Of a DNA stretch of 64,000 nucleotides, positions 1 to 64,000 are shown piece after piece. The stretch's first letter is position 1; each line of letters opens with the position of its first letter. Location of the stretch: the sequence record OP752703.1; one strand, given 5' to 3'. A program made the position numbers and the translations under genes. A model generated the notes under the pieces. It ran no database searches. It saw nothing but the letters and a program-made list of their open reading frames with translations, and had not been told where the DNA came from.

Positions 1-728
1 CCGTGTGTAATATGATGCAGATATAGGTCATTTATTGGATTATAAGATGTGCGCGATATTGACGATGTTTGCGCAAAGTATACCATATTTTCGGGATTTA
101 CAAAAACTTGGAAATCCAAAGACCCTTGTACCGTACAAATTAGTTCACTTAATGAGGCTGTACTATACGTTACGCGAGCAATTACACCATAAGGACCGCC
201 ATCAGTCTGTGAAAGATTACATGTACCAGTGACTCCATTATTCGGCTTAGTATATGCGGCTGACCATGTGTTTCCGAAGTCTAGCGACTGTAATACCATT
301 ACAAATGCAGTGGTATTTGAGTTAGTACTTTTGTTTGTGATAAGGACACGATTGTTTAACCTATCCCATGCCATTGAGTTGAATACAAAATAGGTAGGGG
401 TAACCGAATGCGTCACAGTGCGTTCGGTCCAAGTAGCACCGAAGTCCGTGGATGTATATGTATAAATTGTTGTAGAAGTGCCAGACTGACGAATCGACAT
501 GATGCGACCGTCCCTCGGATCGATTACAACACCAGCTAACGGATAATTCAGGGGGATGCTTAGGAAGTTAGTTTCCCAAGTTAGACCATCAGTCGATTTG
601 AATACGACGATACCAGTTCCATTTTTTGTACTACTTCTTGCTACTGCGATTACCTTAGTACCATCTGGCAAAATTGCGCCATCATAGCCGTAAGGTACTT
701 CGAGTCTATCTCCAATGTAGCTTTGCAT
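1..728 (-). CDS. BNR/Asp-box propeller virion protein, paralog of the next two genes; runs off the left edge (3' partial), absent from the ORF track
   Basis: ATG at 728 preceded by AGGAG. Manual translation MQSYIGDRLEVPYGYDGAILPDGTKVIAVARSSTKNGTGIVVFKSTDGLTW...STDFGATWT...LQSLDFGNTWS stays open to base 1 and aligns with the N-termini of 799..3111 and 3113..5332. Confidence 0.9.
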   Translation of the reverse strand, partial: MQSYIGDRLEVPYGYDGAILPDGTKVIAVARSSTKNGTGIVVFKSTDGLTWETNFLSIPLNYPLAGVVIDPRDGRIMSIRQSGTSTTIYTYTSTDFGATWTERTVTHSVTPTYFVFNSMAWDRLNNRVLITNKSTNSNTTAFVMVLQSLDFGNTWSAAYTKPNNGVTGTCNLSQTDGGPYGVIARVTYSTASLSELICTVQGSLDFQVFVNPENMVYFAQTSSISRTSYNPINDLYLHHITH

Positions 729-798: not shown

Positions 799-3111
799 TT
801 ACTGTTGGTACTGAGCTATGCGGAAGGCTAGCGGAGTATCATATATTGCCGATGGAACTGGCGTATGAGTAGGGGTAACACTTGGTGTCTGTGTCGGAGT
901 AAGTGAAACCAATGGGGCCGAATATTCACCAACACCGAATACTGCGTTAGTTGTAACAGAACCATTGAATGTGGTATCCAATGTCCCATCATAATTCAAA
1001 CGGACAATACCATTTCTAGAAACCTCATTGACACGAATAGTACCAGTTGCTCCTACTAAAATTCTACCATCGTTTAGTACCTTTATACCGTACAATGAGC
1101 CTATGATAGGCTGATTGAATGAAGGATCAAGTCTACCATTAGACTTGAACTTGTTAAGGTAACTATAGCCAGTTTGACCATCAATATTAACTTGAAAACC
1201 AGCGACGATGAACGAATCATCCGGTAGAACTTCTAGATTGTTTAGTGGAACGTTAATACCCGATCCTGTAGTAGTTATAATCGTGAATGTTGGGTCTACC
1301 ACGCCAGTAGTACTCACTCTAGCAAAGTATGACTTACTTACACCACCAATAGTATTAAATTGACCAAAAGCAAGCAAGCTGCCATCGCTTTGTTGACGAA
1401 TAGACGTAGTACCGTTCACCGTTACTGTTGCGAATGAGGAATCAATCGTTCCCGAAGGAATATCAACTTTTATAATTCGACTGCTTGATGCAATATACAT
1501 CTTATTACTATTCTGGTTATCAATCAATATGTAAGGTGTTGAGTGTGTACCAATTGTAGTACCCCATGCAGTATCAACCACACCATTTCCATTCATTTTA
1601 TAAACTCTACCGCCATTTACACCGATATAGTATTCATTTTCACTAATTTTCACCATAGATGAAATGTTTCGTGAAACTCCAATACCTGTTACTGACCATG
1701 TTGGGTTTAAAGTTCCAACTCGGTCAATTCTATTAACTGATACCGTTGGTACTATTCCATTAATAGAGCCGTACTGACCAAATACTATCAATTCATTGGT
1801 TCCTTCAACATGGAAAGAGTTAATGATGAAATCGTTAACCGGTAGTTCTACATTAATCGTCAGTACGTTATTACCATCGTTATCGAACAACGTATATCCC
1901 GTCTGTGCTATACCATTAGCCTGACCAATACGACCATATGCCATCATAGCATTTGTATTGTTTCTCGGAGTAGCAGACATAGTTGCAGTAGCACTAGGAG
2001 TCGGAGTAGGCATTTGAGTTGGAGTACCGATGTAACCGATGCCTGCCCCACGGAATACGCTAGACTGAATGTAACCGGAAATGATTCCAAGCTGATTATC
2101 ATACATCACACAATTATTAGCAAACTGTACTCCCGATTGTTCATAGTTGGTTGAATCATCGAGTGTCCAACCACCAGTACCAGTCTTTGATTTAAAGATT
2201 CTGGATGTATTTGTTCCAATAACACCACCACTAGAATTTATAGTAATTAATACCGTATCATTTGAAGGAGGATAATAGATTATAGAACCAAAAGTCTCAC
2301 CTGAGTTGAATGTAAATCCTAATGGGCGATCTGTGAATGTTGTAAATGCTCCATCGAATTCATGTAACGAATTATTAGTCGTTGAACGGAATGCATATGT
2401 GTCTGTCTGTGGATTATATGTTCCTGTCCAAGTTCTGTTATTTGTATATGGAATAGGCGTGTTGGATGGTAATGGATAGAACGTTACCGTGTCATCCGTT
2501 TCATTAGTTGCAATGATACCCGAGTCACCTGAACCACCGGGCGCACTTGAAAATATACGTCCGACAATACCATGTCTACCCAATTTCTGACTAGATAGTA
2601 TAACTCTGGTATTAGCATTGGTAGCAGTATAGGCTACAGACCACGTATCACCTGCATCAAATGATTGTAGAACGATATTTTTTGCCGTTGTAGTTGAATA
2701 TGTTGATGATGAACCAATCATTAGACGGTTACGCTTATTATCAGCAACTAACTGATTAGTATTACCAACAGTACCAGCGATGCCGTGGGTCACAGTCTTA
2801 GTGGTCCATGTAGCACCTAGATCAGTAGAACGCCACATAAAGATAGCAGAAGTAGAGCTTTGACTAATTGCCACCAGTGTTCCATTCGTACCCACATTCT
2901 CTAAGAATGCAATACTAGTTAAATTTGGAGAATTTAGATAGAACCAGTTAGTATTCCATACTTTACCATCAGTACTGTAGTAAACTACAATACCGTTACC
3001 ATTTTTTGTACTTGTTCGAGTCATTGCAATTACTCGAACACCAGAGGCAGTAGTACCTGTGGTGTCTCCGTAAATGACTTCATTAATGTCTCCAATATAT
3101 GAGGGTTGCAT
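799..3111 (-). CDS. Modular virion/tail-fibre-like protein: N-terminal BNR propeller, Pro/Thr linker, delta-60 (DUF5122-like) propeller, Pro/Thr tail
   Basis: Asp-boxes STDGKVW, STDLGATW, SFDAGDTW; TPTQMPTPTPSAT linker; repeats GxLDPTF / QQSDGSLLAFGQF / VLPDDSFIVAG. Confidence 0.75.
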   Translation of the reverse strand: MQPSYIGDINEVIYGDTTGTTASGVRVIAMTRTSTKNGNGIVVYYSTDGKVWNTNWFYLNSPNLTSIAFLENVGTNGTLVAISQSSTSAIFMWRSTDLGATWTTKTVTHGIAGTVGNTNQLVADNKRNRLMIGSSSTYSTTTAKNIVLQSFDAGDTWSVAYTATNANTRVILSSQKLGRHGIVGRIFSSAPGGSGDSGIIATNETDDTVTFYPLPSNTPIPYTNNRTWTGTYNPQTDTYAFRSTTNNSLHEFDGAFTTFTDRPLGFTFNSGETFGSIIYYPPSNDTVLITINSSGGVIGTNTSRIFKSKTGTGGWTLDDSTNYEQSGVQFANNCVMYDNQLGIISGYIQSSVFRGAGIGYIGTPTQMPTPTPSATATMSATPRNNTNAMMAYGRIGQANGIAQTGYTLFDNDGNNVLTINVELPVNDFIINSFHVEGTNELIVFGQYGSINGIVPTVSVNRIDRVGTLNPTWSVTGIGVSRNISSMVKISENEYYIGVNGGRVYKMNGNGVVDTAWGTTIGTHSTPYILIDNQNSNKMYIASSSRIIKVDIPSGTIDSSFATVTVNGTTSIRQQSDGSLLAFGQFNTIGGVSKSYFARVSTTGVVDPTFTIITTTGSGINVPLNNLEVLPDDSFIVAGFQVNIDGQTGYSYLNKFKSNGRLDPSFNQPIIGSLYGIKVLNDGRILVGATGTIRVNEVSRNGIVRLNYDGTLDTTFNGSVTTNAVFGVGEYSAPLVSLTPTQTPSVTPTHTPVPSAIYDTPLAFRIAQYQQ

Positions 3112-3112
3112 A

Positions 3113-5332
3113 TTAAATTGTCTCTCCGTTTACAGGGAATTGATTAAACGACAATGCTTCATAAACTGGTGAAGATGCCGGGGTGCTGCTTGGGGTCTGT
3201 GTTGGTGTAGGCGTTGGTGTAGGCGTTGGGATAGGGACGATAGTTGAGCGACCAGTTATCACTGAACCATCAAATCCAACTGCTACTAGTAAGTTGTCAG
3301 AAGGAGCATAGGTGATACCCGTAAGGTCTTTTGTATCTGCTACTGCACTTGGCCATGTATTCCATACAATGCCATCTGTAGTAGTCATAACTCTTCGTGT
3401 CCCCATGCGGTTTACAGCTACAAATAGACCTAATTCTTTCGCCCAAACCAAACAGTTCTGTGAGAATTGGGTTCCCGGTTGATTGTGTGGAGTAATAATC
3501 CATTCTATACCATCCGATGATCTAGCAGTATTTGTACCAGTTGCAATGGCTACGAACATGTTAAGTTCGTGTGACCATTCCACAGAAGCCCACGAATTAC
3601 CTTGTAGTGCAGTGGAACCTGTCCAGTTTATACCATCAGAAGAATACATCACCGTGTTTGTATTAGCATTTGCTACTGCCACGAATAGACCTAAATCCTG
3701 TGAGTATGTAACATTCTGCCACAATCCAGCGGCACCTGTGCGCGGAGTCCAATTAATACCATCAGGAGAGGTCATTACGAATGCTGTTGATGTTGTACTT
3801 ACCGCAACGAATAGATTCTTATCAGGTGCCCAAACGACAGACTGCCATGAACATGTATCATTTGCAGAAGGTCTTACGGTCCAATTGATACCATCTGGAG
3901 AAGTAGCCACGCGATTAGTTCCCGTAGATGCTACAGCGACGAATAAGCCAAGACTATCTGACCACGCTATCGAACGCCATGCGTTTGCGACAGGGATAGT
4001 TCTGGCGGTCCAGTTGATGCCGTCAGGAGAAGTCATTGAAGTTCCTGAACCTGAAATTGCAATAGCAGAGAATAACCTCAGCGGCTCAGACCACACTACA
4101 TCCCACCAATTAGGTGTGATTGCGGGAGTACGATTAATCCACTCCAAACCATCAACATTGATTGCCGATGGGGTTGGGGTTGGGGTCATGGACAATGATG
4201 CGCTTGGGGTTATGGACGAGGTTGGGGTTGGAGTTGGGGTAGGTAATGAACCTGCCTTACCCAAATAACCCAACTGAATTCTCTGTGCGGCTGTATAACC
4301 ATGAGAATAAATCTGTACCAACTTACGTAAATCATCATAGAACATACTTACGCCGAATCTATTTTGCGTATTATAAATTGGAGCAGGATCGTAAACCCAA
4401 CCACCATTACCATATACTGATTTAAATGTTCTATACAATGCGGGGTCAACAGAGGCACTATCGGCTCTACACGATGCGAAGAATTGTCCGTCTTCTTCAC
4501 TCCAAACAATATAGGAAATGGTTGAATTTAAATTTGTACTTGGTACAGTAACTTGGCGGGAAGGGCCGTCAGGATCAAGACTGAAACTAATCGAAGTTGC
4601 AGAAGAGCCGGAAGTTAAACCATTAGGTGCAACGTAAGTTCTCGACAATGGTGAATATGCAATAGTATAACCAGCACTTACAGGGTAAATAGTGTCAATT
4701 ACGTCTGGCATTTCTTCCAGAGTATCATCAATCGTGTTACTCTTATAAATGCTATTTCCTGTTCCAGAAGATGCAGAAGCTCTCATGAATAGAGGATATG
4801 GTGCGCCGGGAGCATAAGCTACACCAGCGAATGTACCATTAGCTACTTGGTTGGTAGAGAACGCGGACCATGTAACACCACCATCATTGCTTTGCAGGGA
4901 AGTAATAGCACCTACTGGTAGGTTGATGCGTGAAGCGCTCGATAGAATCAAACGGCTACGCGAAGTATCAAACCATACTGCACTGAATGCAGGCCAACCA
5001 TCACCGCCAGAATCTCCAATTGAACGAGTATTTACTGTCCATGTAGCACCAAAGTCGGTACTTTCTCGTACAGTGATATTATTCGCACTTGATACTGAAT
5101 CAATTACAAAGATTTTGTTATTGGCCGGGTCATAGGCACAACCTGCCATAGCTACAGTAGTCGGTAAGAATTCGGAGGTCCAATTTAGACCATCTTGGGC
5201 GCGCATAACTAGTACACCATTACCGTATGTGGTGCTAGTTCTAGCAATGACCATTACAGCCGAGCCATCTGGTGCTAGACCATAAGCTCGACCGACAATA
5301 ACTTCATTTCTATCGCCAATATATGTTTTCAT
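3113..5332 (-). CDS. Modular virion/tail-fibre-like protein: N-terminal BNR propeller, Pro/Thr linker, second propeller of WxxVxWS..LFVAV..TSPDGINWT repeats, Pro/Thr tail
   Basis: About six SPDGINW-type repeats; PTPTPTPTSS linker; N-terminus shared with neighbours. Confidence 0.75.
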   Translation of the reverse strand: MKTYIGDRNEVIVGRAYGLAPDGSAVMVIARTSTTYGNGVLVMRAQDGLNWTSEFLPTTVAMAGCAYDPANNKIFVIDSVSSANNITVRESTDFGATWTVNTRSIGDSGGDGWPAFSAVWFDTSRSRLILSSASRINLPVGAITSLQSNDGGVTWSAFSTNQVANGTFAGVAYAPGAPYPLFMRASASSGTGNSIYKSNTIDDTLEEMPDVIDTIYPVSAGYTIAYSPLSRTYVAPNGLTSGSSATSISFSLDPDGPSRQVTVPSTNLNSTISYIVWSEEDGQFFASCRADSASVDPALYRTFKSVYGNGGWVYDPAPIYNTQNRFGVSMFYDDLRKLVQIYSHGYTAAQRIQLGYLGKAGSLPTPTPTPTSSITPSASLSMTPTPTPSAINVDGLEWINRTPAITPNWWDVVWSEPLRLFSAIAISGSGTSMTSPDGINWTARTIPVANAWRSIAWSDSLGLFVAVASTGTNRVATSPDGINWTVRPSANDTCSWQSVVWAPDKNLFVAVSTTSTAFVMTSPDGINWTPRTGAAGLWQNVTYSQDLGLFVAVANANTNTVMYSSDGINWTGSTALQGNSWASVEWSHELNMFVAIATGTNTARSSDGIEWIITPHNQPGTQFSQNCLVWAKELGLFVAVNRMGTRRVMTTTDGIVWNTWPSAVADTKDLTGITYAPSDNLLVAVGFDGSVITGRSTIVPIPTPTPTPTPTQTPSSTPASSPVYEALSFNQFPVNGETI

Positions 5333-7005
5333 TAAGTTGCTTCTCCATCTAGTGATGCTGGGTTATAATTCAGTGCTACGTATACGGCAGACGGTGCAGG
5401 AGTCTCTGTTGGCGTAGGTGTCGGTGTAGCTGACAATGTGGCCGAAGGAGTTACCGAAGCAGTTAGAGAAACTGTAGTCGTCGGAGTCGGTGTAGCCGAG
5501 TTTGACGGAGTTACTGTAGCTGTAACTGTTGGAGTCTGCGACTTTGTAGTTTCCGGGGTCGGACTTACTGATGCCGTAGGTGTAACTGTTCCCGTTACTG
5601 TTGGAGTAATGGTAGGAGTTACTGTTGACGATAGTGAAATCGTCGGTGTTACTGTATTTGTAGGAGTCGGACTTAGAGTGTAGACCGGAGTTTCCGTAGG
5701 AGTTTGCGAAGGCGTTTGCGTTGGCGTTCTCGAAGGAGTTCTTGTCTGCGTCGGAGTCGGAGTCTGTGAAGCTGTGATAGAAACTGACAACGTTGGCTTC
5801 GGAGTTCTGCTAGGAGTCTGAGTTGGAGACGCCGTGGTAGAAATCGTTGGAGTAATTGTCGGAGTTAGTGAAGTCGTAGTCGATACAGATACCGAAGGGG
5901 TAACTGTAGGAGTTACGCTTGCACTTCTAGAAATCGTCGGAGTAATCGCCGGAGTTCTAGTATTTGTAGGTGTAATAGTTGGTGTAACCGTATTACTTGG
6001 GGTATTACTTGGAGTTCTAGTTGGCGATCTGGTTACAGAAGGCGTATTAGAAATCGTCGGTGTGACTGTCGGTGTGACAGTTCTACTAGCCGTAGGAGTT
6101 AATGTTGAAGTCGGTGTAACTGTAGGTGTAGGAGTTACAGCAGGACGGTCAACAGTATAACTAATTACCCCATTACAGTAATCAAAACTAATGTCAGCCA
6201 TTTTGACGCCATAACGAGGAACCAGTCCTGCATTCGCGTCTTCAATTACTACTTGGGTATTAGTCCAAAAACTTTCTTGATTTACTAGAGTACCACCAAC
6301 GTTGACCCATTTATGGTCAACCTGATCCATTGAACCACCACTATAAGTGGAGATTACAACTTTAATATTACCATCACGATAACGGGTATACCAAAGACCC
6401 GTTAGAGCCATTACGGTTGAATTATTGGAAGGATACTGAGCCTTAATTGCTGGGAAATCCAACAAGAAGCTTTCAGTACCTTCATTACCTTGTTCGTCGC
6501 CTGCCCACGTAATAAAACCATCGTCTGTAGACTGACGGTCCCAACCAACGTAAACGTTACGCGGCGGATCGGTAATTGCCATGCGAGGATCAAGGTCTTC
6601 ACCATTAGCATATGTCCATACTAAATCAACGACCGCGAAATCGAACGGAATAGTATTACATTGTACCGGCGAAGGAGTAGGAGTTACAGCACCATGGTAT
6701 GAGATTTCAACACCGACCTTATCATCCCACGGAAGTAGGTCAGGACGGCGGACTCGATATGTGCCTTCTGTCTTCAAGTAAATCTGTTGCATGTTCTTAC
6801 TGAAAACAATAAGACCATCGCCCTCAGTTTCTACTTGATAGAAGTTTCCATCAATCCCCTTTACTTCGAGAATCAATGCAGGCCCGGTACTAACGTCAAC
6901 ACCATCGGCAGTATACACGGACACCACAACGCAAACGCTGGATGTTACCGCGAATTCTGCCGAATAGCTTGGGTCAGACCCCGGAAATAGAATACTTTGT
7001 GACAT
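5332..7005 (-). CDS. Virion-associated protein with two small globular domains and a ~250-aa Thr/Pro/Ser mucin-like stalk
   Basis: ATG at 7005 (MSQSIL) preferred over the TTG at 7017; ATAAATA upstream; region ~5390-6140 encodes almost only T/P/S/V/A. Confidence 0.8.
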   Translation of the reverse strand: MSQSILFPGSDPSYSAEFAVTSSVCVVVSVYTADGVDVSTGPALILEVKGIDGNFYQVETEGDGLIVFSKNMQQIYLKTEGTYRVRRPDLLPWDDKVGVEISYHGAVTPTPSPVQCNTIPFDFAVVDLVWTYANGEDLDPRMAITDPPRNVYVGWDRQSTDDGFITWAGDEQGNEGTESFLLDFPAIKAQYPSNNSTVMALTGLWYTRYRDGNIKVVISTYSGGSMDQVDHKWVNVGGTLVNQESFWTNTQVVIEDANAGLVPRYGVKMADISFDYCNGVISYTVDRPAVTPTPTVTPTSTLTPTASRTVTPTVTPTISNTPSVTRSPTRTPSNTPSNTVTPTITPTNTRTPAITPTISRSASVTPTVTPSVSVSTTTSLTPTITPTISTTASPTQTPSRTPKPTLSVSITASQTPTPTQTRTPSRTPTQTPSQTPTETPVYTLSPTPTNTVTPTISLSSTVTPTITPTVTGTVTPTASVSPTPETTKSQTPTVTATVTPSNSATPTPTTTVSLTASVTPSATLSATPTPTPTETPAPSAVYVALNYNPASLDGEAT

Positions 7006-7027
7006 TCTGTTAACCAATTTATCTGTT

Positions 7028-7055: not shown

Positions 7056-7931
7056 TTATAGGTCAACGGATGCCCAAGGGTCGAACTTAACATTCTCTTG
7101 CTTGAAAATATTCCAAAAACGGTAAGCATCGCACTCGAATTTCTCACCATCACATGCTGGAATCCATAGAGAATAGAAATCTGGCGTGTTGATTACCTTA
7201 GAGTAACCACGTGGATTGCATAGGACTCGCGTTCCACCAATTGAATAATCGAAGTTATCGTGCATATGACCGTGGAACCATAGGTCAGGTCCACCATCCT
7301 TGATAAGATCGAATAGATCGGAAGAGAATGCAGGGTTCAGGGAATGACCAGCCCACTTAGGGTGGATTGACAAATGACTCGGGGCATGATGAGAAATTAC
7401 TACAACCTTCGACGCATTGTCTTGTCTAGCCTGAGTAACCGCGTCAAAGATAAACTGTTTATGCCTATCATGAATGATTACCGTATCTTCGGGGTCTAAG
7501 TCGCGGTAACTGTTAGCCTTTACCACGTGATAGTCGTTCAAACCATTCTTAATAGAATGCATTGCATGCTCGCTACGCTTATTCATATCCGTCCATAGCG
7601 TTGCACCCACAAAGGCCACATCATCTACCCAATGGACTTCTTCGTCCAATACGTACACATTCGGGAACTGTGCTAGTTCATCTTTGATATTCTGGACAGC
7701 ATCTTTCATATCACCGTGGTAATACTCATGATTACCCGGAACATAAATGACTTCCTTGAAACGGCCTGCTACATTCTTAAAGAACATTTTCATTTGAGCC
7801 GAGAACCTTGCGGACACGGCAATATCTCCGGCTAGAACCAGTACGCTCGAAGCGTCGTCGTCTTCATCGCCGTAAGGGAGGACAAAGGGACATATTTCTA
7901 GGTGAAGATCACTTACATATCGGATTTTCAT
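7056..7931 (-). CDS. Calcineurin-like metallophosphoesterase
   Basis: Motifs SDLH, AGDI, PGNHE, SHHAP, FHGHMH. Confidence 0.9.
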   Translation of the reverse strand: MKIRYVSDLHLEICPFVLPYGDEDDDASSVLVLAGDIAVSARFSAQMKMFFKNVAGRFKEVIYVPGNHEYYHGDMKDAVQNIKDELAQFPNVYVLDEEVHWVDDVAFVGATLWTDMNKRSEHAMHSIKNGLNDYHVVKANSYRDLDPEDTVIIHDRHKQFIFDAVTQARQDNASKVVVISHHAPSHLSIHPKWAGHSLNPAFSSDLFDLIKDGGPDLWFHGHMHDNFDYSIGGTRVLCNPRGYSKVINTPDFYSLWIPACDGEKFECDAYRFWNIFKQENVKFDPWASVDL

Positions 7932-7940
7932 TATAATTTC

Positions 7941-7947
7941 CTAAATA
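7941..7947 (+). promoter_or_regulatory. Late-type box CTAAATA upstream of the cysteine peptidase
   Basis: Followed by GGGAGAGG RBS and ATG 7968. Confidence 0.55.
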
Positions 7948-7967
7948 ATTGGGAGAGGATTAATATC

Positions 7968-15717: not shown

Positions 15718-15718
15718 A

Positions 15719-48302: not shown

Positions 48303-48303
48303 A

Positions 48304-55161: not shown

Positions 55162-58100
55162 TTAATTAGATGGGAAAATTAGAACATTCCATAGATCGTC
55201 ATTTACAATTACCGGTGTCGCTGATGGCGTTGGCGTCGGTGTAATTGTACTTGACGGTGTAGGAGTCGGTGTAGCAGTTGATGATGGGGTTGGAGCAGCC
55301 GGTGTAGGTGATGGGGTTGGAGACGGCTCTGGTGGAGCAACCTCACAACCCGGTCCTTCGACTAGTCGTAGTTCATCATATGGTACGTTTACACTTTCCT
55401 GCACATTCTCTGAAATCTGTAGAGCTACCCATGAAGTCTTCAAGAAGTCTCCGTACTCTTTCTTCAAACTGATAGCGTCATGCAATACTGCGAAATATAG
55501 AGCATTTACTTCGGAAACCGAGAAGCCCTGATAGATTGCAGTCATTGCAGCAACGATACCTTGCGGAGTGTTGAAATCGTTGTTGTCTAGGAACTCTGGA
55601 ATACTTACGAATTCAAACTCACGGGTCGGATCAGTTAAGAACTGCATGATAGTTCTCAATGACAATTCCTTGTCCGTGAATACCTGCTGATCCCCTAGAC
55701 CGAACTGCGTATCAGCTTGGAATAGCTGATCGTATAGAATACGGTTTAGTGACGGGATTTGCTTGGTCAATTCAATTTCATTTGCACTATTCAAGCGGTA
55801 GCCGATTAGGGCCTCAACCATCTTGTTCCATAGGTAGCTATCAACCTTCTCGAATTGCTTCTCACGGAATAGTTTCCATTCTTCGTGACGGTTCTTCGGA
55901 GTCATCGTGGCTCTGTCTAGCGTATCGCGTAGGGTGAAGTCACGGGTGAATCGAATTACGTAACGGTTTTCTTCCTTGACTGTACCCTGTAGGCCACGGA
56001 TAATGGCCTGAGTGTAGCGGTACGGTAGGTCGTAACCATATTCATCGAAAATGTTACCGAATAGCAGACCATAACCGAATTCCGGTGTACGGAATCCTGC
56101 ACAAATCATGTACGGAGCGCTCATATCATTTAACATCTTCTGCGAAGTGTAAATGGTAGTGATGTTCGTACCAACTGAAATGTCGTTCTTCTTCTCGGTT
56201 ACCCAATAGTAGTAACGGTTGAAAATTTCACCTGACTTACTATCGAAACGCTTTTCGATTGTGTGAGGGGTGAACCAACGATACTTCTGTAGACGAATTT
56301 CCTCAGCGGTTGGAACCGGTAGAGGTATGATAGCATTTATGTAGTTACCGAAGTACATATCTTCGAAGTAAGCCTTAACAGCACCACCATTTTCAAACGT
56401 CATATTCTCGATGAATACACCATTAATGTATAGATCAACAGTCTTACCCTGCAAGGCAGTAATCGATTCTTCGTATAGACCAGCAATGAACTTAATGTTC
56501 GTTGGTAGAACTTCTACCCAATACGGTGGTGCGTCAACGTCATCAGGGTCTTGGAACTTAATATTCTCATATAGACGTTTATAAACGGTTCCGGTAACCT
56601 TATCGTTATTCGGTAGACGTAGGTTCTGCGCATCCTTAGCCGACTGTTCATCGTATTCTTCTGGTGTTAGGATAGAAGAAGTCCACTGATACAGCTTAAT
56701 ACCAGCCCAAGGCGCTAGCTTACCCCATACGGAAATACGGTTGTTGATGTTACGCATTACGTTCTGATCGTAATATGGTACGTAGTCTTCATTAGAAGAA
56801 TCCATCCATACCTGACCTTCATGGTTGCCCTTCCATAGAGCGGTTCCAGTGTTGGAACCATCTAGAGAAACGTTGTAGATAGCTGGGTCAACTGGACGGT
56901 TCAAGTCTACAACAGCATAAGCTGGGGTGTAGTATTGACCAAACGCTGGATGCCAGATAGGTAGTTCTGTAGTAACAACGCCAGAAACCTTGTCAATTAC
57001 CTTTGCAGGGTTATGAGATTCATAGTCGTATGTTAATACATTTAGAGTTACATTGTAAAGACCGCGAGGATCGGTAATGAATTCAATGATGTACGAGTTA
57101 ATGATCTTATAATCAATATCTCGGATCATTGTTTTCACTACGCCTTCATTTCTATCAAAGTAAGTCAAGATCACATTAGGCATGATCGTTTCACTTAGAT
57201 AAATTAATTTATCAGATACAACCATTACCTTATCTGACACATTAGTGTCAAGACCAATTACCTTAGTATTGAAGAAGAATGACTGGTTTGGAGCCATTGC
57301 CTGCAACTGGTCAGGCTGGTTCCACCAACGCGACATATCGGTTAGCTGGATACTCTTGAACGTCAAGTCCGGTGCAACATTTTCTGGCGCAACAAATTCT
57401 AGGCGTAGTTCATTACGAACTGCGTCGTCTGGAATTAGTTTCATTTCCAAATGGTTACGTTCGTTGTTGTCACCGAATTCAGCAACCTTGTAAGCCCAAA
57501 ACTCGTCAACATCCGCAGACTCGAAACGGCTCTGGTTAACGAAAGCATCAACTGAGCGAATCGAACCCTTACTCTGGATCATACCCTGCCAGAACTGGAA
57601 CTGAGTCTTAGCGTTAATCTTTAGGGAATTCATGTAATCCTTCGGACCATCATAACCCATAGATTTTCTTGCAAGTTCAGTAGCCAAGCGTCCTTCTGCT
57701 GCGTTGGTCGCATCATAGAAGTAGCGCATGTCATTTGTTACAGATTCTAGGTTCTGTACTAGGCTGTCCCCTTGGATTACAAAACCGCCCACGTTAGGAC
57801 GTAGGGTGAAATTCTGCTGGCGGTCAAACTCTACGTAGAAACGTGGAGTCGCTAGGCCGAAGAATGAATCATAGATCAATGAGCCGGAAACTGAGTAATC
57901 GTTGAAGTGGATGATATGCTCGTAACCATCGAAGAATAGGTGCATACCGGCCATATGATGGGTCGGTCTACCATTGATTTCTGCAATGTTATTTGAGTCA
58001 CGGATATCACCGGTCAAGCTGATACGGCTTTCCTTATCCTGTCGATACACCAACACATCCGACACAGGAAGCTCTAGGAGCGTGTTGTCGTACAGTCTTG

Positions 58101-61100
58101 ATGCTGAGGTCGGATCAGTGTAGTCTTCGTCTAGAACGTTGCCTAGGACGCCTTGTGCATGCTGTACCCATACGTAGTGCTTGAATGGATTGATTTCATG
58201 TGAAGGGAATTGGGCAATATCCTTATACATTTGAACACGGAAGTTACCAGCGGATGCGCCGATTTCAATTGTGTTACCACGTAGAGCATCAGCCTTCGTA
58301 ACAGCCAACTTGAAGCTGGTGTTATCGTTCGCATTACGTACAACATAATACGGGATGGATGCGGTAAATGGTGTGTCAAATGCTGCTGGAAGCTTATTAT
58401 TACCTTCCTGTAGAATGATAATCGCAGTACCATTCTGCCAATTAGGAATCGTACCGTCAACCATCGTGATACTATTGTCAAATCCTGTAGAGGTTACAGA
58501 GTAAGACTGCATCGCTTCCTGATTGTAGTTACGTAGAGCATATAGCCAGTTTACGAATTTCTCAATTTCCGTATGCCAGTTATTGTTCATACCGGTTACG
58601 CGGTCATAGTTGTCCGCATTCTCGTTCTTGAACTGGAATCCCTGAGCATTAGTGTATGCAGCGTAACCGGTTAGGAAGTCGATCATCAACTGGATACCTG
58701 AAATACTTAGGTTGTTAGCCTTCAAGACATAACGAGTATCAACGTGGTGAGTTCTCCACACGTAGTCGGTCTTCACACCACCAAGGGCAGTGAAAGTCAT
58801 TTCCAAACGGCCAGCATATGCTTCACCAAGAGCAGTACCATTAATCGACATAGCGATACCAATAGCTGCTGCTTCGGCGGTTTCAGCAATCTTGAATGTA
58901 CGGTCGTCAATACGGATTACGAAGTACGGAATTTCATCATCAATACCAGTCGGCAAGTAGCCTGTGGTGTTGAAATAAATCATAGTACCAGTTACCCATT
59001 CTTCCGGTAGCGTAATCGCATTGGCAGGTTCGATAACACCGGTAACGGTGATAGGACCAAGAGTAGGAACGGTAATATCTTCCTTGACGAAAATGAATGT
59101 TTCCATTTCATTTTGGTCGTAGAATAGGCGATCAATAGTGTACGTTCCGTTGAAGATAGCGTCATCGGTAATAATTACCTGAGTCTGCGACTCAAATACA
59201 TTGATGAAGTTACCGGCAATACGGAAACACTTCTTGAAATCATTGTTGATAACGCTTGAAGGAGTCATGCTATCGAAAGTAGCGACAGCCATGAACGCAT
59301 CTGGTTCAGTAATGTCTACTGAGCTATCTGCTGTGGTGTCGTTACTATAGACGGCGATAGTACCATTGTCAATAGCAGCACGTCCGAAATCCTTGATTTC
59401 AAAGTTTAGAGCATATAGGAATTCTTCAACAGTAGCTACACCGTTAATGATAGCAGTTACAGTATCCGTACCATTGAATGTAATTGATACATCGTATTCT
59501 TCGTCAATAACCATGTTAGTTTCACTTGATAGTGAAAGTGGCTGGTTGTAAATTACGTTCACAACTGAGGTTGACGGAGTATAAACTACGCCAGTTAGCG
59601 GGTATGAGAAAGTACGAATCGTGTTATCACCACGGTTCATATTGACAGAATAGTTCTGAACCCCGTAGTATTCCATCTGACGCGCAATCGGAGACACATT
59701 GTTGAAGCTGGCAGTCCAACCGATACCCTGATCGCGTAGTTTAGAATACTGGCTAGGAATGCTCGTCACCACAGCTTCTAGAGACTGTAGCCATTTATCA
59801 GAAATACCCTTGGTCTTCTTGATAGCAATCTCATAATCCTTGTTCGTAATGTCGAAGTAATCGTTATGAATTGAGAAGCTTGAAGTGTCAATGAAAGCAC
59901 CGACCAAGTAGGAAAGGTCAGGAGTCCAATCTCTCCATAGAGAACGGAACTCGGACGCAATACCATCGTAGCCTGCGTAACGGTTGTAGTGAACGTACCA
60001 CTGGTTCAAACCAAACGAACGGTAGATATCATTCTCTGCGTCGATGAAATCGCCGTGGAAGATAATGTCGCGGTGGCTGTAAACCTTTTCAGTTTCAGTT
60101 GAAATCTGTAGGCACGAAACTAGGTGATAGTCAACACCAATTAGAGAGTGCATGAACTTCATCGGGTCTAGCATGTAGGCCACGATTAGCTGGTCATACA
60201 AGTATGCACCAGAGTTCTTCCATTCCCACTCAGTTAGACCGTCCTGTCCGAAAGTGAAATCAGCATTCGGAGTAGTTACGAATTCACTGCTGTTTGGATC
60301 GTACAGACCACGAACGCGAGCGTCAGTGGTGTTTGCACTGTTCCAATATGGAGGCAAAATCGCATCTAGACCGTAACCATCAGAGGTTACAGTGATTGAA
60401 GTGTTTACCGGTAGGTATGCGAAACGCTTAGAAATTGTACCAGCAGTACCAGTCGAGATATCTCCTGACGGAGTTGCACGGCCAGACGGGACAATACCAG
60501 AAAAGATATTGGTCCACATCTGACGGTTCCAGCGACGTGTGTTGCTAGTATCGTTATAAGTTTCAGCCCACCATGTTGGCTCGCTAGTATAACCCTGTAG
60601 AATCCATGGTTCTAGGTGAGGATATGCAGTACCGAAAACATTCTCATATAGAGCCTGCCAAGTACCGGCCACGTCATAGTTTACACCGCCAGTTACAGGA
60701 TCAACCTTGATTGGAGTGTAAGCGTAGTTCCAAGTGAATGGATTGTTCTGACGGAAACGATCAGCATTTGAAAGAGGCTGGTCAATGTGTTCGCTTAAAG
60801 CGTAAGCATTGAACTGAGCTTCCATCAACGATTCGTAGTCCGGGTTTGATTTTAGAGCTTCGAAATTATATTCGTTGGTGCGATCTTCTGCAACGGAAAC
60901 GTCATATAGTCGAGTTTCGATATCTAGAACAGTCTGTGCGAAAATCGCATTGATATCCATACGTTCCCAAGTTAGGTTGGTAGACGCACGGTATAGCGTG
61001 ATTGTATTCGCAGTTCTGTTAATTCTCTGTAGCAATAGACCGTTGTAAATCGGCTTACCTTCGTAAACACTCGGGAACGATTCATTCTCAGAATTTACGA

Positions 61101-64000
61101 TCTGCTTAATTACAGTAGCACCCTTTAGGATGCGATTCATCAATTGCTGGCGAAGAGCCGGAGAGAATGCAACATCAATTTGGCGACCGTCATGGCCCGT
61201 TACGACATAAATGCCACGGGTAGAGTCAGCAACTAGGGTCGGCTTGACTGGCTTAATAACACCGAACTGAGGTAGTGAGGCAATCCAGTTGCGGATACCT
61301 ACATTCTTAGAAGAATCGTATGATGTAGAGTCACCGAACCACTGATCGTACTTACCGTTATTCTCTACCAATCCAACAATATCTGAGATAATAGTTGAAG
61401 TTAGTTCAGTGATGTTATCTACATCATCGTTGTTGAATAGATTTACGGCAGACTGGAAGAATCGATCCTTAACATAACGAATCTGAGATTCATACTGTAG
61501 CTTGGCGAATTCGATTACACGAACCGGATTACCATTGTTAACGAAAATAGAGGACACAAGAGTGTCGAAGCTTTCGTTATGCTCCTTGATTGTACCACCG
61601 ATACCGTAGTTAATTTCATCATCGATGAAGAATAGGTTACCGGTAGTGCTGAACATACCCGGCTGTTCCTGTAGATCAATGATCGACTTGAAGTGACGGT
61701 AAATCTGTGTTAGGTTGAATTCAGTGTAATTCTTATGGTCGATGTTATAGTACCACTGGTTTGGCATTTCCCACTGACCGTCAATCTTTACAGGACGGTA
61801 CATTTCATTGTGAGTTCCGCGCTTCCAAATGGTCTGTAGTTCATCGCCTACATTCTGGAAATCGTAGTAGCAGTATAGACGGCCAGACTCAGCGTCGCTC
61901 AATTCCTGAACGAAACTGTAATCATTACCATCAGTAACAACGCGTTTTAGAAGGATCGGGTTAACAACCGCGTCAGCAGATTCCTTATACTTAAAGATAG
62001 AGGTTGCGAACGGTAGACGGTTTCCGTAAATGTCGCGTAGAGAGAAGAATGGATACTGATTGGTTTCATTCTTAGTCTGTTCGATGCGACGGATGCCTAC
62101 TAGGTTCACTAGATCGCGGCCAGTCGGAGTCACAACCGAAACAGCACCTAGGCCGATTTCAGATTCAGCGTACTCGCCTAGCTCAACGCGGATAACGTCA
62201 TTCGGTTGAACAACGAAATCGTTGACGAAACGAATACCAGCAACGTAGTCTGGTGTCAAGTCTGACTGAATGTCTTCAAAGATACCGTACTTACGCTTAC
62301 CGTTGATGTAAACACGAATGTCGCCTTCCTGATAGTCATCGATTAGAACGATGTTCTGTAGGGAAGGGTCGAATACTAGAACCGCGTCCATTACTGGCTG
62401 CGAAGATTCTAGGCTATATTCCTGAGAAGTCAAGCCTACGATAGTTTCAAAGTCACCCACAACGTAGCTCTGGACATTAATGTCCAGCATTGGGTTCTTC
62501 TTTGGTTCTAAGCTCGATGCACTGATTTCTTTAACACCACCGTACTGCCACTGAGCAGCGCCTAGACCTAGGAAGGTATCACCGGCAGCGGTCTTAGCTG
62601 GCTGAATGGTCGCACCGAACGGTAGGTCAGCAGTCAAAGCTAGAGGGTTAGAGAAGCGTAGAGTTGTGACGAAACGTCCACCGGTTGCTGGCTGTGAGTA
62701 ATCAGTGCTGGCAATGGTGTAGTAACCATCGTTCTGTGCAAATCCTACAAGCTTAATATCTTCACCAGCTTTCAACTCTGAACCGAAGTTACCGTACTTA
62801 CTGTTGAAAGTAATGGTGTACGCGTCAACGATATCAAATTCATCGCCAGTGTAAGAAAAGTCTAGTAGTTCGATCATGCGCGGAGCAATGGTCGAATCAA
62901 CGTAGGCAGTGTTGTCAAGCTTACGGTATCTCCAAATCTTTTCAGAGTATGAAGTGTTTGACATTTCTAGGAACGGGAAGTATTCGATGATCGGAATCTG
63001 AGCGCGAACCATACCGCTGTATTCGGTGATCTGTGAACGATGTACCCAATGGTTGGTATCTGACCAATCATTATCATTTGAGTAATCGGAAACTGAACGA
63101 GATTCAATGGATTTCTCTAGAAGAGAAACGCCCTTATAAACCTGCTTCCACTCTGTACCCGTCCACTGTAGAAGTGAATCTGATAGTGGGTTGTAGGATA
63201 GCTGGAAGTCTTCCGGGTTTGATGGAAGTACAGTGTTGGTAATCAATTCTAGAGAGAACGGACGAACGATACGGTACGATAGGTCTTCACTTGTGAAGAA
63301 CGTTGTGTCCGTAGTCAAGGTCGAGCCATTAACTGCTACGATTCCATAAGAACCTTCATTCTTCTCACCATTACTGATGACGATCTTGTCGCCTACTTTA
63401 ACATTGTACTGTGAGAAGTCAATGCTTGTGTCAGTGAAATTAGAAGAGTTTAGAGTAGTCGATCCACTCGAACCTGATACGATTGCGTAGTAATTATACC
63501 ATAGAACCTGTCCAATGTGACTGTCACTCCATTCTTCGAAGAATAGAGAAGCGTATGGGTCTTCGGATACTTCGTGTTCTGCATTCATCATGTTGATTAG
63601 TGGGAACATCGAAACGTAAGAGTATGCACCAACAACTCCTTCTAGAGTTACTGATGTTACATTGGCTACAGCGTCGAAAGTGCTTGACAATACCTTGACA
63701 ACCTGAGTCACCGGGGTATCAACTGAAACCAAATATCCTTCTACTAGAAGGTTGGTGAAGTCACCACGTAGACGGGTTACACCATCACGAACCGTGATGA
63801 TCGGAATATCAATACTCGCCATATAGACTGAACTTTGGTCAGCCGGAATTGTGAACTCTTCCGATACGAAGATTTCAGTATTTGTAGTTGAAATATTATA
63901 TTGGATGTTGGTGATCGTCAATGGTACATTTGTACCATCTGGCTGGATCAATACAATGTGGCTACCGACCGGGTACTTACTGGCATTATTACCAGCAATA
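55162..64000 (-). CDS. Giant structural protein, probable baseplate wedge/hub; 5' partial; Pro/Thr tail
   Basis: Frame stays open from the TTG at 63951 to the window edge (>2940 codons); structural neighbourhood; ends PEPSPTPSPTPAAPTPSSTATPTPTP.. Confidence 0.7.
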   Translation of the reverse strand, partial: IAGNNASKYPVGSHIVLIQPDGTNVPLTITNIQYNISTTNTEIFVSEEFTIPADQSSVYMASIDIPIITVRDGVTRLRGDFTNLLVEGYLVSVDTPVTQVVKVLSSTFDAVANVTSVTLEGVVGAYSYVSMFPLINMMNAEHEVSEDPYASLFFEEWSDSHIGQVLWYNYYAIVSGSSGSTTLNSSNFTDTSIDFSQYNVKVGDKIVISNGEKNEGSYGIVAVNGSTLTTDTTFFTSEDLSYRIVRPFSLELITNTVLPSNPEDFQLSYNPLSDSLLQWTGTEWKQVYKGVSLLEKSIESRSVSDYSNDNDWSDTNHWVHRSQITEYSGMVRAQIPIIEYFPFLEMSNTSYSEKIWRYRKLDNTAYVDSTIAPRMIELLDFSYTGDEFDIVDAYTITFNSKYGNFGSELKAGEDIKLVGFAQNDGYYTIASTDYSQPATGGRFVTTLRFSNPLALTADLPFGATIQPAKTAAGDTFLGLGAAQWQYGGVKEISASSLEPKKNPMLDINVQSYVVGDFETIVGLTSQEYSLESSQPVMDAVLVFDPSLQNIVLIDDYQEGDIRVYINGKRKYGIFEDIQSDLTPDYVAGIRFVNDFVVQPNDVIRVELGEYAESEIGLGAVSVVTPTGRDLVNLVGIRRIEQTKNETNQYPFFSLRDIYGNRLPFATSIFKYKESADAVVNPILLKRVVTDGNDYSFVQELSDAESGRLYCYYDFQNVGDELQTIWKRGTHNEMYRPVKIDGQWEMPNQWYYNIDHKNYTEFNLTQIYRHFKSIIDLQEQPGMFSTTGNLFFIDDEINYGIGGTIKEHNESFDTLVSSIFVNNGNPVRVIEFAKLQYESQIRYVKDRFFQSAVNLFNNDDVDNITELTSTIISDIVGLVENNGKYDQWFGDSTSYDSSKNVGIRNWIASLPQFGVIKPVKPTLVADSTRGIYVVTGHDGRQIDVAFSPALRQQLMNRILKGATVIKQIVNSENESFPSVYEGKPIYNGLLLQRINRTANTITLYRASTNLTWERMDINAIFAQTVLDIETRLYDVSVAEDRTNEYNFEALKSNPDYESLMEAQFNAYALSEHIDQPLSNADRFRQNNPFTWNYAYTPIKVDPVTGGVNYDVAGTWQALYENVFGTAYPHLEPWILQGYTSEPTWWAETYNDTSNTRRWNRQMWTNIFSGIVPSGRATPSGDISTGTAGTISKRFAYLPVNTSITVTSDGYGLDAILPPYWNSANTTDARVRGLYDPNSSEFVTTPNADFTFGQDGLTEWEWKNSGAYLYDQLIVAYMLDPMKFMHSLIGVDYHLVSCLQISTETEKVYSHRDIIFHGDFIDAENDIYRSFGLNQWYVHYNRYAGYDGIASEFRSLWRDWTPDLSYLVGAFIDTSSFSIHNDYFDITNKDYEIAIKKTKGISDKWLQSLEAVVTSIPSQYSKLRDQGIGWTASFNNVSPIARQMEYYGVQNYSVNMNRGDNTIRTFSYPLTGVVYTPSTSVVNVIYNQPLSLSSETNMVIDEEYDVSITFNGTDTVTAIINGVATVEEFLYALNFEIKDFGRAAIDNGTIAVYSNDTTADSSVDITEPDAFMAVATFDSMTPSSVINNDFKKCFRIAGNFINVFESQTQVIITDDAIFNGTYTIDRLFYDQNEMETFIFVKEDITVPTLGPITVTGVIEPANAITLPEEWVTGTMIYFNTTGYLPTGIDDEIPYFVIRIDDRTFKIAETAEAAAIGIAMSINGTALGEAYAGRLEMTFTALGGVKTDYVWRTHHVDTRYVLKANNLSISGIQLMIDFLTGYAAYTNAQGFQFKNENADNYDRVTGMNNNWHTEIEKFVNWLYALRNYNQEAMQSYSVTSTGFDNSITMVDGTIPNWQNGTAIIILQEGNNKLPAAFDTPFTASIPYYVVRNANDNTSFKLAVTKADALRGNTIEIGASAGNFRVQMYKDIAQFPSHEINPFKHYVWVQHAQGVLGNVLDEDYTDPTSASRLYDNTLLELPVSDVLVYRQDKESRISLTGDIRDSNNIAEINGRPTHHMAGMHLFFDGYEHIIHFNDYSVSGSLIYDSFFGLATPRFYVEFDRQQNFTLRPNVGGFVIQGDSLVQNLESVTNDMRYFYDATNAAEGRLATELARKSMGYDGPKDYMNSLKINAKTQFQFWQGMIQSKGSIRSVDAFVNQSRFESADVDEFWAYKVAEFGDNNERNHLEMKLIPDDAVRNELRLEFVAPENVAPDLTFKSIQLTDMSRWWNQPDQLQAMAPNQSFFFNTKVIGLDTNVSDKVMVVSDKLIYLSETIMPNVILTYFDRNEGVVKTMIRDIDYKIINSYIIEFITDPRGLYNVTLNVLTYDYESHNPAKVIDKVSGVVTTELPIWHPAFGQYYTPAYAVVDLNRPVDPAIYNVSLDGSNTGTALWKGNHEGQVWMDSSNEDYVPYYDQNVMRNINNRISVWGKLAPWAGIKLYQWTSSILTPEEYDEQSAKDAQNLRLPNNDKVTGTVYKRLYENIKFQDPDDVDAPPYWVEVLPTNIKFIAGLYEESITALQGKTVDLYINGVFIENMTFENGGAVKAYFEDMYFGNYINAIIPLPVPTAEEIRLQKYRWFTPHTIEKRFDSKSGEIFNRYYYWVTEKKNDISVGTNITTIYTSQKMLNDMSAPYMICAGFRTPEFGYGLLFGNIFDEYGYDLPYRYTQAIIRGLQGTVKEENRYVIRFTRDFTLRDTLDRATMTPKNRHEEWKLFREKQFEKVDSYLWNKMVEALIGYRLNSANEIELTKQIPSLNRILYDQLFQADTQFGLGDQQVFTDKELSLRTIMQFLTDPTREFEFVSIPEFLDNNDFNTPQGIVAAMTAIYQGFSVSEVNALYFAVLHDAISLKKEYGDFLKTSWVALQISENVQESVNVPYDELRLVEGPGCEVAPPEPSPTPSPTPAAPTPSSTATPTPTPSSTITPTPTPSATPVIVNDDLWNVLIFPSN

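Follow-up and report, generated by a model that had tools for sequence, protein, structure and literature searches.

A predicted mucin-type O-glycosylation system pairing a GT60 enzyme with Thr/Pro-rich proteins in Stenotrophomonas jumbo phages

The subject of this work is a 64-kb stretch of DNA (64,000 nucleotides (nt), hereafter the window), which carries a gene cluster headed by a member of glycosyltransferase family GT60, as well as genes for proteins with tracts rich in threonine and proline (TP tracts). The window matches two Stenotrophomonas maltophilia jumbo phages, CM1 (OP883945) and RAS14 (OP752703), at 100% identity, and RAS14 coordinates are obtained by adding 62000 to those of the window. 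The CM1 record is unannotated, and the RAS14 record consists almost entirely of entries labelled 'hypothetical protein'. The closest isolated relatives are the Xanthomonas phages XacN1 and Xoo-sp13, with about 69% nucleotide identity across the GT60 cluster, while the Ralstonia phage RsoM2USA is more distantly related. An earlier note on this DNA had listed eight glycan-related loci, and had proposed that the phage uses them to glycosylate Thr/Pro linkers in its own proteins. By Pfam, PHROG, hhalign and fold comparison all eight are supported as glycan enzymes, with unequal strength. Four of them form the GT60 cluster, which ends in a hairpin:

44485-45921, plus strand: GT60 (PF11397 'GlcNAc') glycosyltransferase, predicted to be an initiating polypeptide alpha-N-acetylglucosamine (GlcNAc) transferase from Pfam, phrog_24687 and a structural model
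46002-48302, plus strand: NodU/CmcH-type O-carbamoyltransferase with Carbam_trans_N and Carbam_trans_C domains, predicted to carbamoylate a sugar hydroxyl
48292-49170, plus strand: single-domain remote paralog of the HtrL glycosyltransferase-like domain, from hhalign and its WIDAG and GGxFGG motifs
49197-50834, plus strand: two-domain glycosyltransferase with an HtrL_YibB-like N-domain and a GT-A C-domain, predicted from Pfam and an AlphaFold 2 (AF2) model to extend the glycan
50838-50861, no strand assigned: terminator-like bidirectional hairpin at the end of the GT60 cluster

The GT60 protein matches PF11397 with an E-value of 1.5e-73 and 248.7 bits against a cut-off of 21, covering profile positions 1-350 of 352, which is above the curated threshold and over the full domain; the match to phrog_24687 is stronger still (3e-196). 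A D134-S135-H136 triplet is invariant among the 20 diverse relatives compared; in GT27 enzymes, a motif of this DxH form binds manganese. The AF2 model (predicted local distance difference test score (pLDDT) 90.2) has a GT-A catalytic domain carrying this DxD/DxH-type motif, followed by a small beta-rich C-terminal domain of about 100 amino acids (aa 380-478). Neither the single sequence nor a 20-sequence profile gave a useful match among all PDB chains, so the enzyme was compared by fold. The top 15 Foldseek matches in the PDB are all polypeptide N-acetylgalactosamine (GalNAc) transferases, including GalNAc-T2, T7 and T12 and the Toxoplasma GalNAc-T3. Most of these align over about 490-530 columns, near the full length of the model. 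According to a review, GT60 is the protist family of enzymes that transfer alpha-GlcNAc to polypeptides; it is related to GT27, initiates mucin-type chains with GlcNAc, and lacks the C-terminal ricin-type lectin domain of GT27 (PMC8724618). Hydropathy analysis found no transmembrane segment or signal peptide in any of the enzymes or TP proteins discussed here, and therefore any reaction between them would take place in the host cytoplasm. Upstream of GT60 lies a hairpin with a T-run. The gene on the far side of it, 43778-44380, was considered as a further member of the GT60 unit and rejected, as it is parted from GT60 by the hairpin and is kept beside RNase H in RsoM2USA.

Next in the cluster, the carbamoyltransferase matches both Carbam_trans_C (3.6e-57, 193.1 bits) and Carbam_trans_N (2.5e-27, 96.7 bits) above cut-off, as well as phrog_1601 (3e-125). 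Its match to the NodU model is 1e-50 at 173 bits, below the equivalog cut-off of 1000. NodU itself acts on a GlcNAc hydroxyl of Nod factors. The gene adjoins GT60 in seven other viral loci and in XacN1. We also see a C-terminal extension of about 230 aa (aa 535-766) that matches no family; it is shared with XacN1 and loci L002-L004, and is missing from the 547-555-aa homologs in loci L032-L036.

The third gene, 48292-49170, has no Pfam match, and was assigned by an hhalign comparison with the N-domain of 49197-50834 (98.7%, E 2e-16). Its family lies beside GT60 in ten other viral loci and in XacN1. The two-domain enzyme at 49197-50834 matches HtrL_YibB (PF09612) with 5e-21 and 75.9 bits over a threshold of 24.1, although the NCBIfam equivalog cut-off is not reached. 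It has WxD and GGxFGG motifs in the first domain, and NNSTD and EDD (E372-D373-D374) in the second. A profile search of the PDB with this enzyme returned no matches. Its AF2 model (pLDDT 88.8) has tandem GT-A domains, for which the best folds are K4 chondroitin polymerase, LH3, LARGE1 and COLGALT1, with heparosan synthase PmHS2 further down. As modelled, this tandem layout resembles known bifunctional glycan polymerases. A full-length homolog lies on the same strand as GT60, and often abuts it, in 29 of 45 viral loci fetched from IMG/VR as GT60 ± 10 kb, and is present in 33 of 80 bacterial loci (bacterial counts throughout refer to the best 80 GT60 loci). The HtrL/GT-A enzyme is the most constant partner of GT60.

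The remaining four glycan-related loci lie outside the cluster, three of them at the head of the tail operon:

14407-15040, plus strand: Maf/MptE-like gene (phrog 'alpha-2,3-sialyltransferase'), frameshifted, comprising open reading frames (ORFs) 14350/14407-14739 and 14696-15040
15037-15717, plus strand: intact Maf/MptE-like paralog, a putative ulosonic-acid-type glycosyltransferase (phrog_2111 7e-57, phrog_4603 5e-19)
15710-17035, plus strand: fusion of a TylF-type sugar O-methyltransferase (aa 16-171) and a GT-A-like glycosyltransferase (aa 225-440)
28810-30414, plus strand: fusion of a divergent GT-B (group 1-like) glycosyltransferase (aa 1-300) and an alpha/beta-hydrolase-like domain (aa 300-530)

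The two ORFs at 14407-15040 match positions 1-62 and 80-173 of the phrog_4603 profile, and alignment with the intact XacN1 ORF375 reveals one gene split by a one-base insertion (+1 frameshift) near 14722-14730. At region level this stretch is 100% matched by CM1 and RAS14; the frameshift may mark a pseudogene or a sequencing error common to both records. Neither Maf/MptE-like gene reaches the PF01973 threshold of 34.6 bits (21.1 and 16.4 bits), and 15037-15717 also has a sub-threshold NCBIfam match to WaaZ. For the methyltransferase-glycosyltransferase fusion, the TylF match (PF05711) scores 4.7e-7 and 29.7 bits over a cut-off of 23 for a partial domain (profile positions 88-246 of 264), and the glycosyltransferase half matches phrog_1962 with 1.2e-35. 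Exhaustive HMMER search split 28810-30414 into its two domains. The N-domain has an E-x7-E-type motif and a match to PDB 8xsg at E 2e-4; its relatives display a GT-B-type 'TH-ESVGL--LEAAM-G' motif, and five of 31 homologs have weak Glyco_trans_1_4 matches. This fusion is the weakest of the eight assignments. We grade GT60, the carbamoyltransferase, the HtrL enzyme and the TylF fusion as strong, and the two Maf-like genes as moderate.

Some features of these enzymes would fit a different target. They might build or alter a host envelope glycan (lipopolysaccharide (LPS) core, O-antigen or exopolysaccharide) during infection, for instance to block superinfection or remodel the surface, with the TP tracts serving as plain flexible spacers. 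The HtrL_YibB family takes its name from a gene in the LPS core locus of E. coli, the faint WaaZ match of 15037-15717 is to a 3-deoxy-D-manno-octulosonic acid (Kdo) transferase, and a GT9-type gene lies nearby in XacN1. NodU-type enzymes work on free oligosaccharides, and the tandem GT-A fold is also like that of capsule polymerases. On the other hand, all the enzymes are soluble, inspection of the window showed neither a membrane-anchored enzyme nor a gene for a flippase, polymerase or lipid carrier, and the fold of GT60 is nearest to polypeptide transferases. Together with the glycoprotein staining and the genomic linkage described below, this makes an envelope target improbable in our view.

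If the target is instead protein, the candidate acceptors are the TP proteins. The earlier note had named five, and Thr/Pro/Ser tracts were confirmed in each, although the giant gene runs out of the window. A third propeller paralog, of which just the C-terminal end is in the window, adds a sixth TP-linker protein to those five:

1-728, minus strand: third propeller paralog, C-terminal end (RAS14 59426-62728, 1100 aa), with two TP linkers just beyond the window
799-3111, minus strand: paralogous double propeller protein (DUF5122 repeats), with TP linkers at aa 368-382 (nt 1966-2010) and aa 736-751 (nt 859-906)
3113-5332, minus strand: double beta-propeller (BNR/Asp-box-like), with TP linkers at aa 362-390 (nt 4163-4249) and aa 700-718 (nt 3179-3235)
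5332-7017, minus strand: mucin-like protein and predicted main acceptor, with a globular N-domain (aa 1-290), TP repeats and a short C-terminal tail
17023-18639, plus strand: neck/tail-region protein with a TP/S linker between two domains, aa 358-395 (nt 18094-18207)
55162-64000, minus strand: giant virion structural protein with a C-terminal TP linker at nt 55213-55293 (aa 2887-2913 of the in-window ORF)

The mucin-like protein has about 250 aa of TPT[VI]TP-type repeats (aa 295-540, nt 5398-6135), in which the 240 residues in runs comprise 91 Thr, 35 Ser and 46 Pro. It matches phrog_24956 and phrog_15511, and has syntenic TP-rich homologs in XacN1 and Xoo-sp13. The paralogs 799-3111 and 3113-5332 each have one TP linker between their propellers and a second before a short C-terminal tail. 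Sequences of the propeller and mucin-like paralogs all end in a short, similar tail containing ..[AP][IV]Y.. (for example PSAIYDTPL, SPVYEALSF, PSAVYVALNY and GAIYAAKPL), which follows directly on the final TP linker or forms the C-terminus (799-858, 3113-3178 and 5332-5397 on the minus strand, and RAS14 59426-59470). This tail could be a docking peptide that anchors these proteins to the virion. The neck/tail-region gene lies directly 3' of the Maf-like and methyltransferase-glycosyltransferase genes and directly 5' of the sheath stabiliser. In all three GT60-positive lineages, glycan genes are found within the tail operon, immediately upstream of TP proteins.

The earlier note had also predicted the five TP proteins to be virion proteins. 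For the giant protein this is borne out by a homolog: it matches phrog_10938 (8e-63), its gene extends to RAS14 117162-126578 (3138 aa, with the N-terminus outside the window), and RsoM2USA ORF361 was assigned to a band of >288 kDa in a virion gel analysed by mass spectrometry (PMC8504454). Position argues likewise for 17023-18639, as do relatives annotated as tail fibre or baseplate in other phages for the second propeller of 3113-5332. For the trio at 799-7017, a place in the virion as fibre-like proteins is a prediction.

Expression signals were assessed through a recurring promoter-like [A/C]TAAATA box:

14378-14384, plus strand: box before the operon of Maf-like, methyltransferase-glycosyltransferase, TP-protein and sheath genes
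28798-28804, 45963-45969 and 49167-49173: further boxes

The earlier note had reported late-type boxes before four glycan gene starts. The motif is present at all four positions, 11-38 nt upstream of the ATGs, and is strongly enriched before starts in general: the window has 33 TAAATA copies, and 21 of them are found no more than 80 nt upstream of the start of a gene on the same strand, compared to about 3% expected (binomial p ~1e-23). It also precedes the sheath, the tube, many structural genes and the mucin-like gene (box at 7033). The word 'late' is analogy rather than finding, because the box is also found before nucleotide-metabolism and aminoacyl-tRNA synthetase (aaRS)-like genes. Thus it is not confined to structural genes as a T4-type late promoter would be, and the exact T4 late consensus TATAAATA is not enriched in the window (three copies, with 4.2 expected).

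Evidence for a link between GT60 and TP tracts comes from the comparison of genomes. The earlier note had named a lack of co-occurrence in relatives as grounds for dropping the idea, and the two were found together in searches run in both directions with controls. GT60 is rare among isolated phages, occurring in four of 50,697 records (CM1, RAS14, XacN1 and Xoo-sp13), but more than 6500 relatives are found in metagenomes; the best 120 of these are 53-100% identical over about 455 aa, on contigs of up to 345 kb. In the forward direction, the 45 viral GT60 loci were searched for TP-rich ORFs, defined as at least 150 aa with a dense T/P/S window. Such an ORF lies within 10 kb in 19 of 45 loci, often directly beside GT60. 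With near-duplicates collapsed the count is 14 of 33, compared to none of 118 viral loci picked by random 15-mers (p 4e-11); among loci picked by an (AP)7 pattern, 11 of 120 have a TP-rich ORF. In the reverse direction, 120 viral loci (1.13 Mb) were picked solely by a (PT)7 DNA pattern and searched for GT60 with a hidden Markov model. Nine contain GT60s that are mutually distinct, whereas the 238 control loci contain none (0/120 for (AP)7 and 0/118 for random; Fisher p 4e-5).

GT60 is immediately adjacent to, and co-oriented with, a TP gene in L006, L031, L033, L036, L040-43, L107, L455, L484 and L488. Pfam and PHROG scans of the TP-rich partners in other viral loci gave few functional names, and mostly matches to phrog_15511, a family with no assigned function that may be recognising the repeats themselves. 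An exception was the L107 PT protein, for which matches to families of minor tail, tail fibre and virion structural proteins were obtained. GT60 relatives also occur on at least 312 contigs of bacterial genomes or metagenome-assembled genomes, and a strictly PT-alternating ORF lies within 10 kb in 30 of the 80 bacterial loci. We also observed VgrG, the spike of the type VI secretion system (T6SS), in 13 of these 80, with six of the VgrGs carrying long C-terminal (PT)n tracts. The VgrG gene lies about 5 kb from GT60 in chromosomes of Burkholderiales and Dyella (L424 12273-15134, minus strand; L417, L447, L454, L456 and L440). Because these VgrG tracts lie near GT60, the same glycosylation logic may extend to secretion-system spikes.

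Co-occurrence could in principle be a by-product, if large environmental phages and gene-exchanging bacteria tend to carry both kinds of gene, with the TP tracts unglycosylated and GT60 modifying some other protein or a single site, as for Skp1. The 111 of 120 (PT)7 loci that lack GT60 in the fetched stretch would fit this, as would the more than half of GT60 loci with no TP ORF within 10 kb, and the controls were not matched for virus type or habitat. It accounts poorly for the frequent adjacency and shared orientation of GT60 and TP genes, and for the total absence of GT60 from (AP)7 linker loci, a comparable low-complexity class. It also sits badly with the pattern kept at syntenic genes inside one phage clade (below), and we regard it as unlikely. 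An envelope target, for its part, leaves the two-way, controlled linkage unexplained.

Within the clade, all GT60-positive isolates (CM1/RAS14, XacN1 and Xoo-sp13), which infect Stenotrophomonas, Xanthomonas citri and Xanthomonas oryzae, have syntenic TP tracts. XacN1 ORF334 is the GT60 homolog (70.7% identical), in a cluster with the same gene order. Between the Maf-like/methyltransferase-glycosyltransferase genes and the sheath stabiliser, XacN1 ORFs 369, 370 and 372 and Xoo-sp13 331 and 332 have far longer TP tracts than the window, and further tracts occur in XacN1 ORF325 and ORF350 and in Xoo-sp13 343. Located between the tail tube genes, XacN1 ORF350 (L001 5857-7893) encodes 654 aa with long TP tracts where the window has merely a 196-aa ORF (31863-32453), so TP content varies widely among GT60-positive phages. 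A scan of the whole RsoM2USA genome (344 kb) found no GT60, HtrL, Maf-like, methyltransferase-glycosyltransferase or GT-B/hydrolase homolog, and no real TP tract; a carbamoyltransferase is retained, at 28% identity. The RsoM2USA giant protein ends exactly where the TP tail of the GT60-positive phages starts. This joint absence of GT60 and TP tracts is likewise left unexplained by an envelope target.

Biochemical evidence comes from XacN1, a direct relative. Gels of its virion proteins showed at least two Schiff-stained bands, and the authors suggested ORF328 (GT9) and ORF334 as their source (Yoshikawa et al. 2018, PMC5852040). Glycoprotein in the virions speaks against an envelope target. The same study speaks to a further possibility, that the glycosyltransferases modify phage DNA bases as a defence against restriction. 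Many phage glycosyltransferases do so, as reviewed in the literature, and a thymidylate-synthase-like gene is present elsewhere in the genome. However, XacN1 DNA was cut by BssHII, NaeI, SpeI and other ordinary restriction enzymes (PMC5852040), which argues against bulk DNA glycosylation. No hydroxymethylase or fold of the DNA-glycosyltransferase type was found, and protein is the target indicated both by the fold matches of GT60 and by its linkage to TP tracts; we consider a DNA target highly improbable.

A variant on the protein theme concerns the residue modified. As in the Skp1 pathway, the prolines of the TP tracts might be hydroxylated first and GlcNAc then added to hydroxyproline by GT60. 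In the viral loci L107, L158 and L111, a PF13640 2-oxoglutarate (2OG)-Fe(II) oxygenase of prolyl-hydroxylase type (4e-20) adjoins a PT-repeat gene. The arrangement in L107 (60-5807, minus strand), apparently one operon, comprises a PT-repeat tail-like protein, the oxygenase, a radical S-adenosylmethionine (SAM)/SPASM protein, GT60 (3e-35) and a nucleoside diphosphate (NDP)-sugar epimerase/dehydratase, with L158 and L111 being similar; it recalls the eukaryotic Skp1 hydroxyproline-GlcNAc pathway. In the window, 35653-36264 (plus strand) is a distant relative with the double-stranded beta-helix fold of 2OG oxygenases, conserved in XacN1, RsoM2USA and the metagenomic loci L002-L005. We rejected this gene as an active phage prolyl hydroxylase, as its family lacks the HxD...H iron-binding residues and is kept even in GT60-negative RsoM2USA. 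No other oxygenase was found in the window, and the nearest folds of GT60 are Ser/Thr-directed transferases, so that hydroxyproline is a distinctly improbable acceptor here.

Taking these data together, we give a probability of roughly 0.6 to the reading, based on sequence analysis, that the phage encodes a cytoplasmic mucin-type O-glycosylation system acting on its own Thr/Pro/Ser-rich linkers. The core proposal of the earlier note is thereby supported, by the co-occurrence of GT60 and TP tracts, by a fold nearest to GalNAc-transferases and by the Schiff-positive virions of XacN1. From the observed family assignments, TP tracts and genomic linkage we infer the sugar, the residue, the order and timing of the steps and the role of the coat. 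Soluble GT60 would take a uridine diphosphate (UDP)-sugar from the host, most likely UDP-GlcNAc, and place a first N-acetylhexosamine on Thr or Ser of the TP repeats, either ahead of assembly or while it is under way; the proteins so modified would be the fibre-like, neck and giant ones. The HtrL/GT-A enzyme, perhaps with the paralog 48292-49170, would lengthen the chain, and the NodU-type carbamoyltransferase would decorate a sugar hydroxyl. Further sugars may be attached, modified or trimmed by the second enzyme set at the head of the tail operon (Maf-like and TylF methyltransferase-glycosyltransferase) and by the GT-B/hydrolase fusion. Possible roles for the resulting coat are stiffening of linkers, protection from proteases, shielding, and sticking to host polysaccharide.

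Several observations weigh against this reading. The donor and acceptor specificity of GT60 is assigned by analogy of family and fold, because no characterised GT60 or PDB chain was matched by sequence. TP linkers are common in bacteria, and often unglycosylated. Just nine of the 120 (PT)7 viral loci have a GT60 in the 1-15 kb fetched around the match, and the control loci represent a different virus mix than the GT60 loci, such that the enrichment could partly reflect lineage or habitat. One of the two Maf-like genes (14407-15040) is frameshifted. The [A/C]TAAATA box that precedes other glycan genes is missing from GT60, and is found before ribonucleotide reductase and aaRS-like genes. Glycoprotein staining comes from XacN1 alone, rather than from CM1 or RAS14, and the proteins in the stained bands were not identified. 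Finally, a lipid-linked or polysaccharide target is conceivable, because E. coli HtrL and WaaZ-like relatives belong to the LPS core locus.

The other features recognised in the window are mainly those of tail assembly, replication and nucleotide metabolism:

10111-13741: ribonucleotide reductase
18639-19430: tail sheath stabiliser
19530-21677: tail sheath
23987-25336, minus strand: class I aaRS-like protein (449 aa; tRNA-synt_1 2e-62 and an anticodon-binding domain)
31203-31787 and 32453-33220: tail tube
33217-33681: head closure
36718-39366: DNA polymerase, by synteny with XacN1
40784-41752: RNase H, by synteny with XacN1

The aaRS-like protein is far smaller than the cellular Ile, Leu and Val enzymes, and a PTH2-like peptidyl-tRNA hydrolase domain lies close by, at 26311-27096. 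Neighbouring the operon of the TP proteins are a metallophosphoesterase (7056-7931, minus strand) and a weak papain-like C1 peptidase (7902-8630, plus strand). The same two neighbours are XacN1 ORF382 and ORF383, and Xoo-sp13 has the metallophosphoesterase. Unrelated to the glycan genes, RsoM2USA contains at ~188.6-207.6 kb some 30 tandem genes of about 570-640 nt each, apparently one expanded paralog family.

The proposed system has partial parallels elsewhere. It is like the protist GT60 enzymes of mucin-type initiation in Dictyostelium and Trypanosoma cruzi, and Skp1 Gnt1, in its PF11397 family, GT-A fold and DxH motif, and in the presence of Thr/Pro-rich acceptor-like repeats in the same genome, often next door in relatives; like Gnt1, the enzyme is soluble and cytoplasmic. 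Unlike those, it is phage-encoded in a Gram-negative host, is about 455-480 aa long with a C-terminal beta domain, and has no sequence match to a solved structure. Its partners are an HtrL-type dual glycosyltransferase and a carbamoyltransferase, not the protist extension enzymes, and the phage activity is a prediction. The metazoan and apicomplexan GT27 polypeptide GalNAc-transferases provide the best structural matches, also have the DxH motif and act on Thr/Ser/Pro-rich substrates. However, they share just 10-13% sequence identity with the phage enzyme, belong to another CAZy family, and are Golgi type II membrane proteins using UDP-GalNAc.

Among viruses, mycobacteriophage glycosyltransferases are said by Freeman et al. 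(2023) to modify phage structural proteins in the host cytoplasm. The similarity is of phage-encoded glycosyltransferases acting on phage structural proteins, here predicted from genes. In mycobacteriophages the glycans are on C-terminal extensions of capsid and tail tube subunits, whereas we predict them on TP linkers of fibre-like, neck and giant proteins, with a predicted GT60 initiator and a Gram-negative host. Mimivirus performs self-encoded glycosylation of its virion surface proteins. In chlorovirus PBCV-1, a parallel drawn by the XacN1 authors (PMC5852040), virus-encoded cytoplasmic glycosylation also acts on virion surface proteins. These are eukaryotic giant viruses, with different enzymes and linkages.

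Mycobacteriophage virion glycosylation, the XacN1 suggestion of 2018 and protist GT60 mucin-type initiation were thus already known. The XacN1 paper mentions neither the GT60 family nor the TP tracts, nor the partner enzymes (HtrL, carbamoyltransferase and Maf-like), and contains no comparative test (PMC5852040). Our literature search gave no publication that connects GT60 or PF11397 with phages or TP linkers, and none on RAS14. What is new is that a set of enzymes centred on GT60 has been assigned to TP-repeat acceptors in a jumbo phage of a Gram-negative host, together with controlled evidence that the pairing recurs widely in viruses and bacteria. More tentatively, and with rather more doubt than confidence, we suggest that GT60 and the HtrL dual enzyme could form a widespread, undescribed prokaryotic and viral module for mucin-type O-glycans on the Thr-Pro linkers of extracellular machines (phage fibres, giant tail proteins and the T6SS VgrG of Burkholderiales), to which some viruses might add a prolyl-hydroxylase-type oxygenase. 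Such a module would be a prokaryotic counterpart, and possibly the source, of eukaryotic GT60 and GT27.

If the proposed reading is correct, a phage of Gram-negative bacteria would here be assigned a mucin-type protein O-glycosylation system for the first time, with both the initiating family and the acceptor motif named, and the system would explain the virion glycoproteins of XacN1. It would provide a function for the GT60 and HtrL genes that number in the thousands across metagenomes and bacteria, and a sequence rule, TP repeats beside GT60, by which glycosylated phage and secretion-system proteins could be predicted. A glycan coat on fibres and tails matters for how phages recognise their hosts, how stable they are in soil and on plants, and how therapeutic phages are recognised by the immune system, while the link to eukaryotic GT27 and GT60 would bear on the origin of mucin-type glycosylation.

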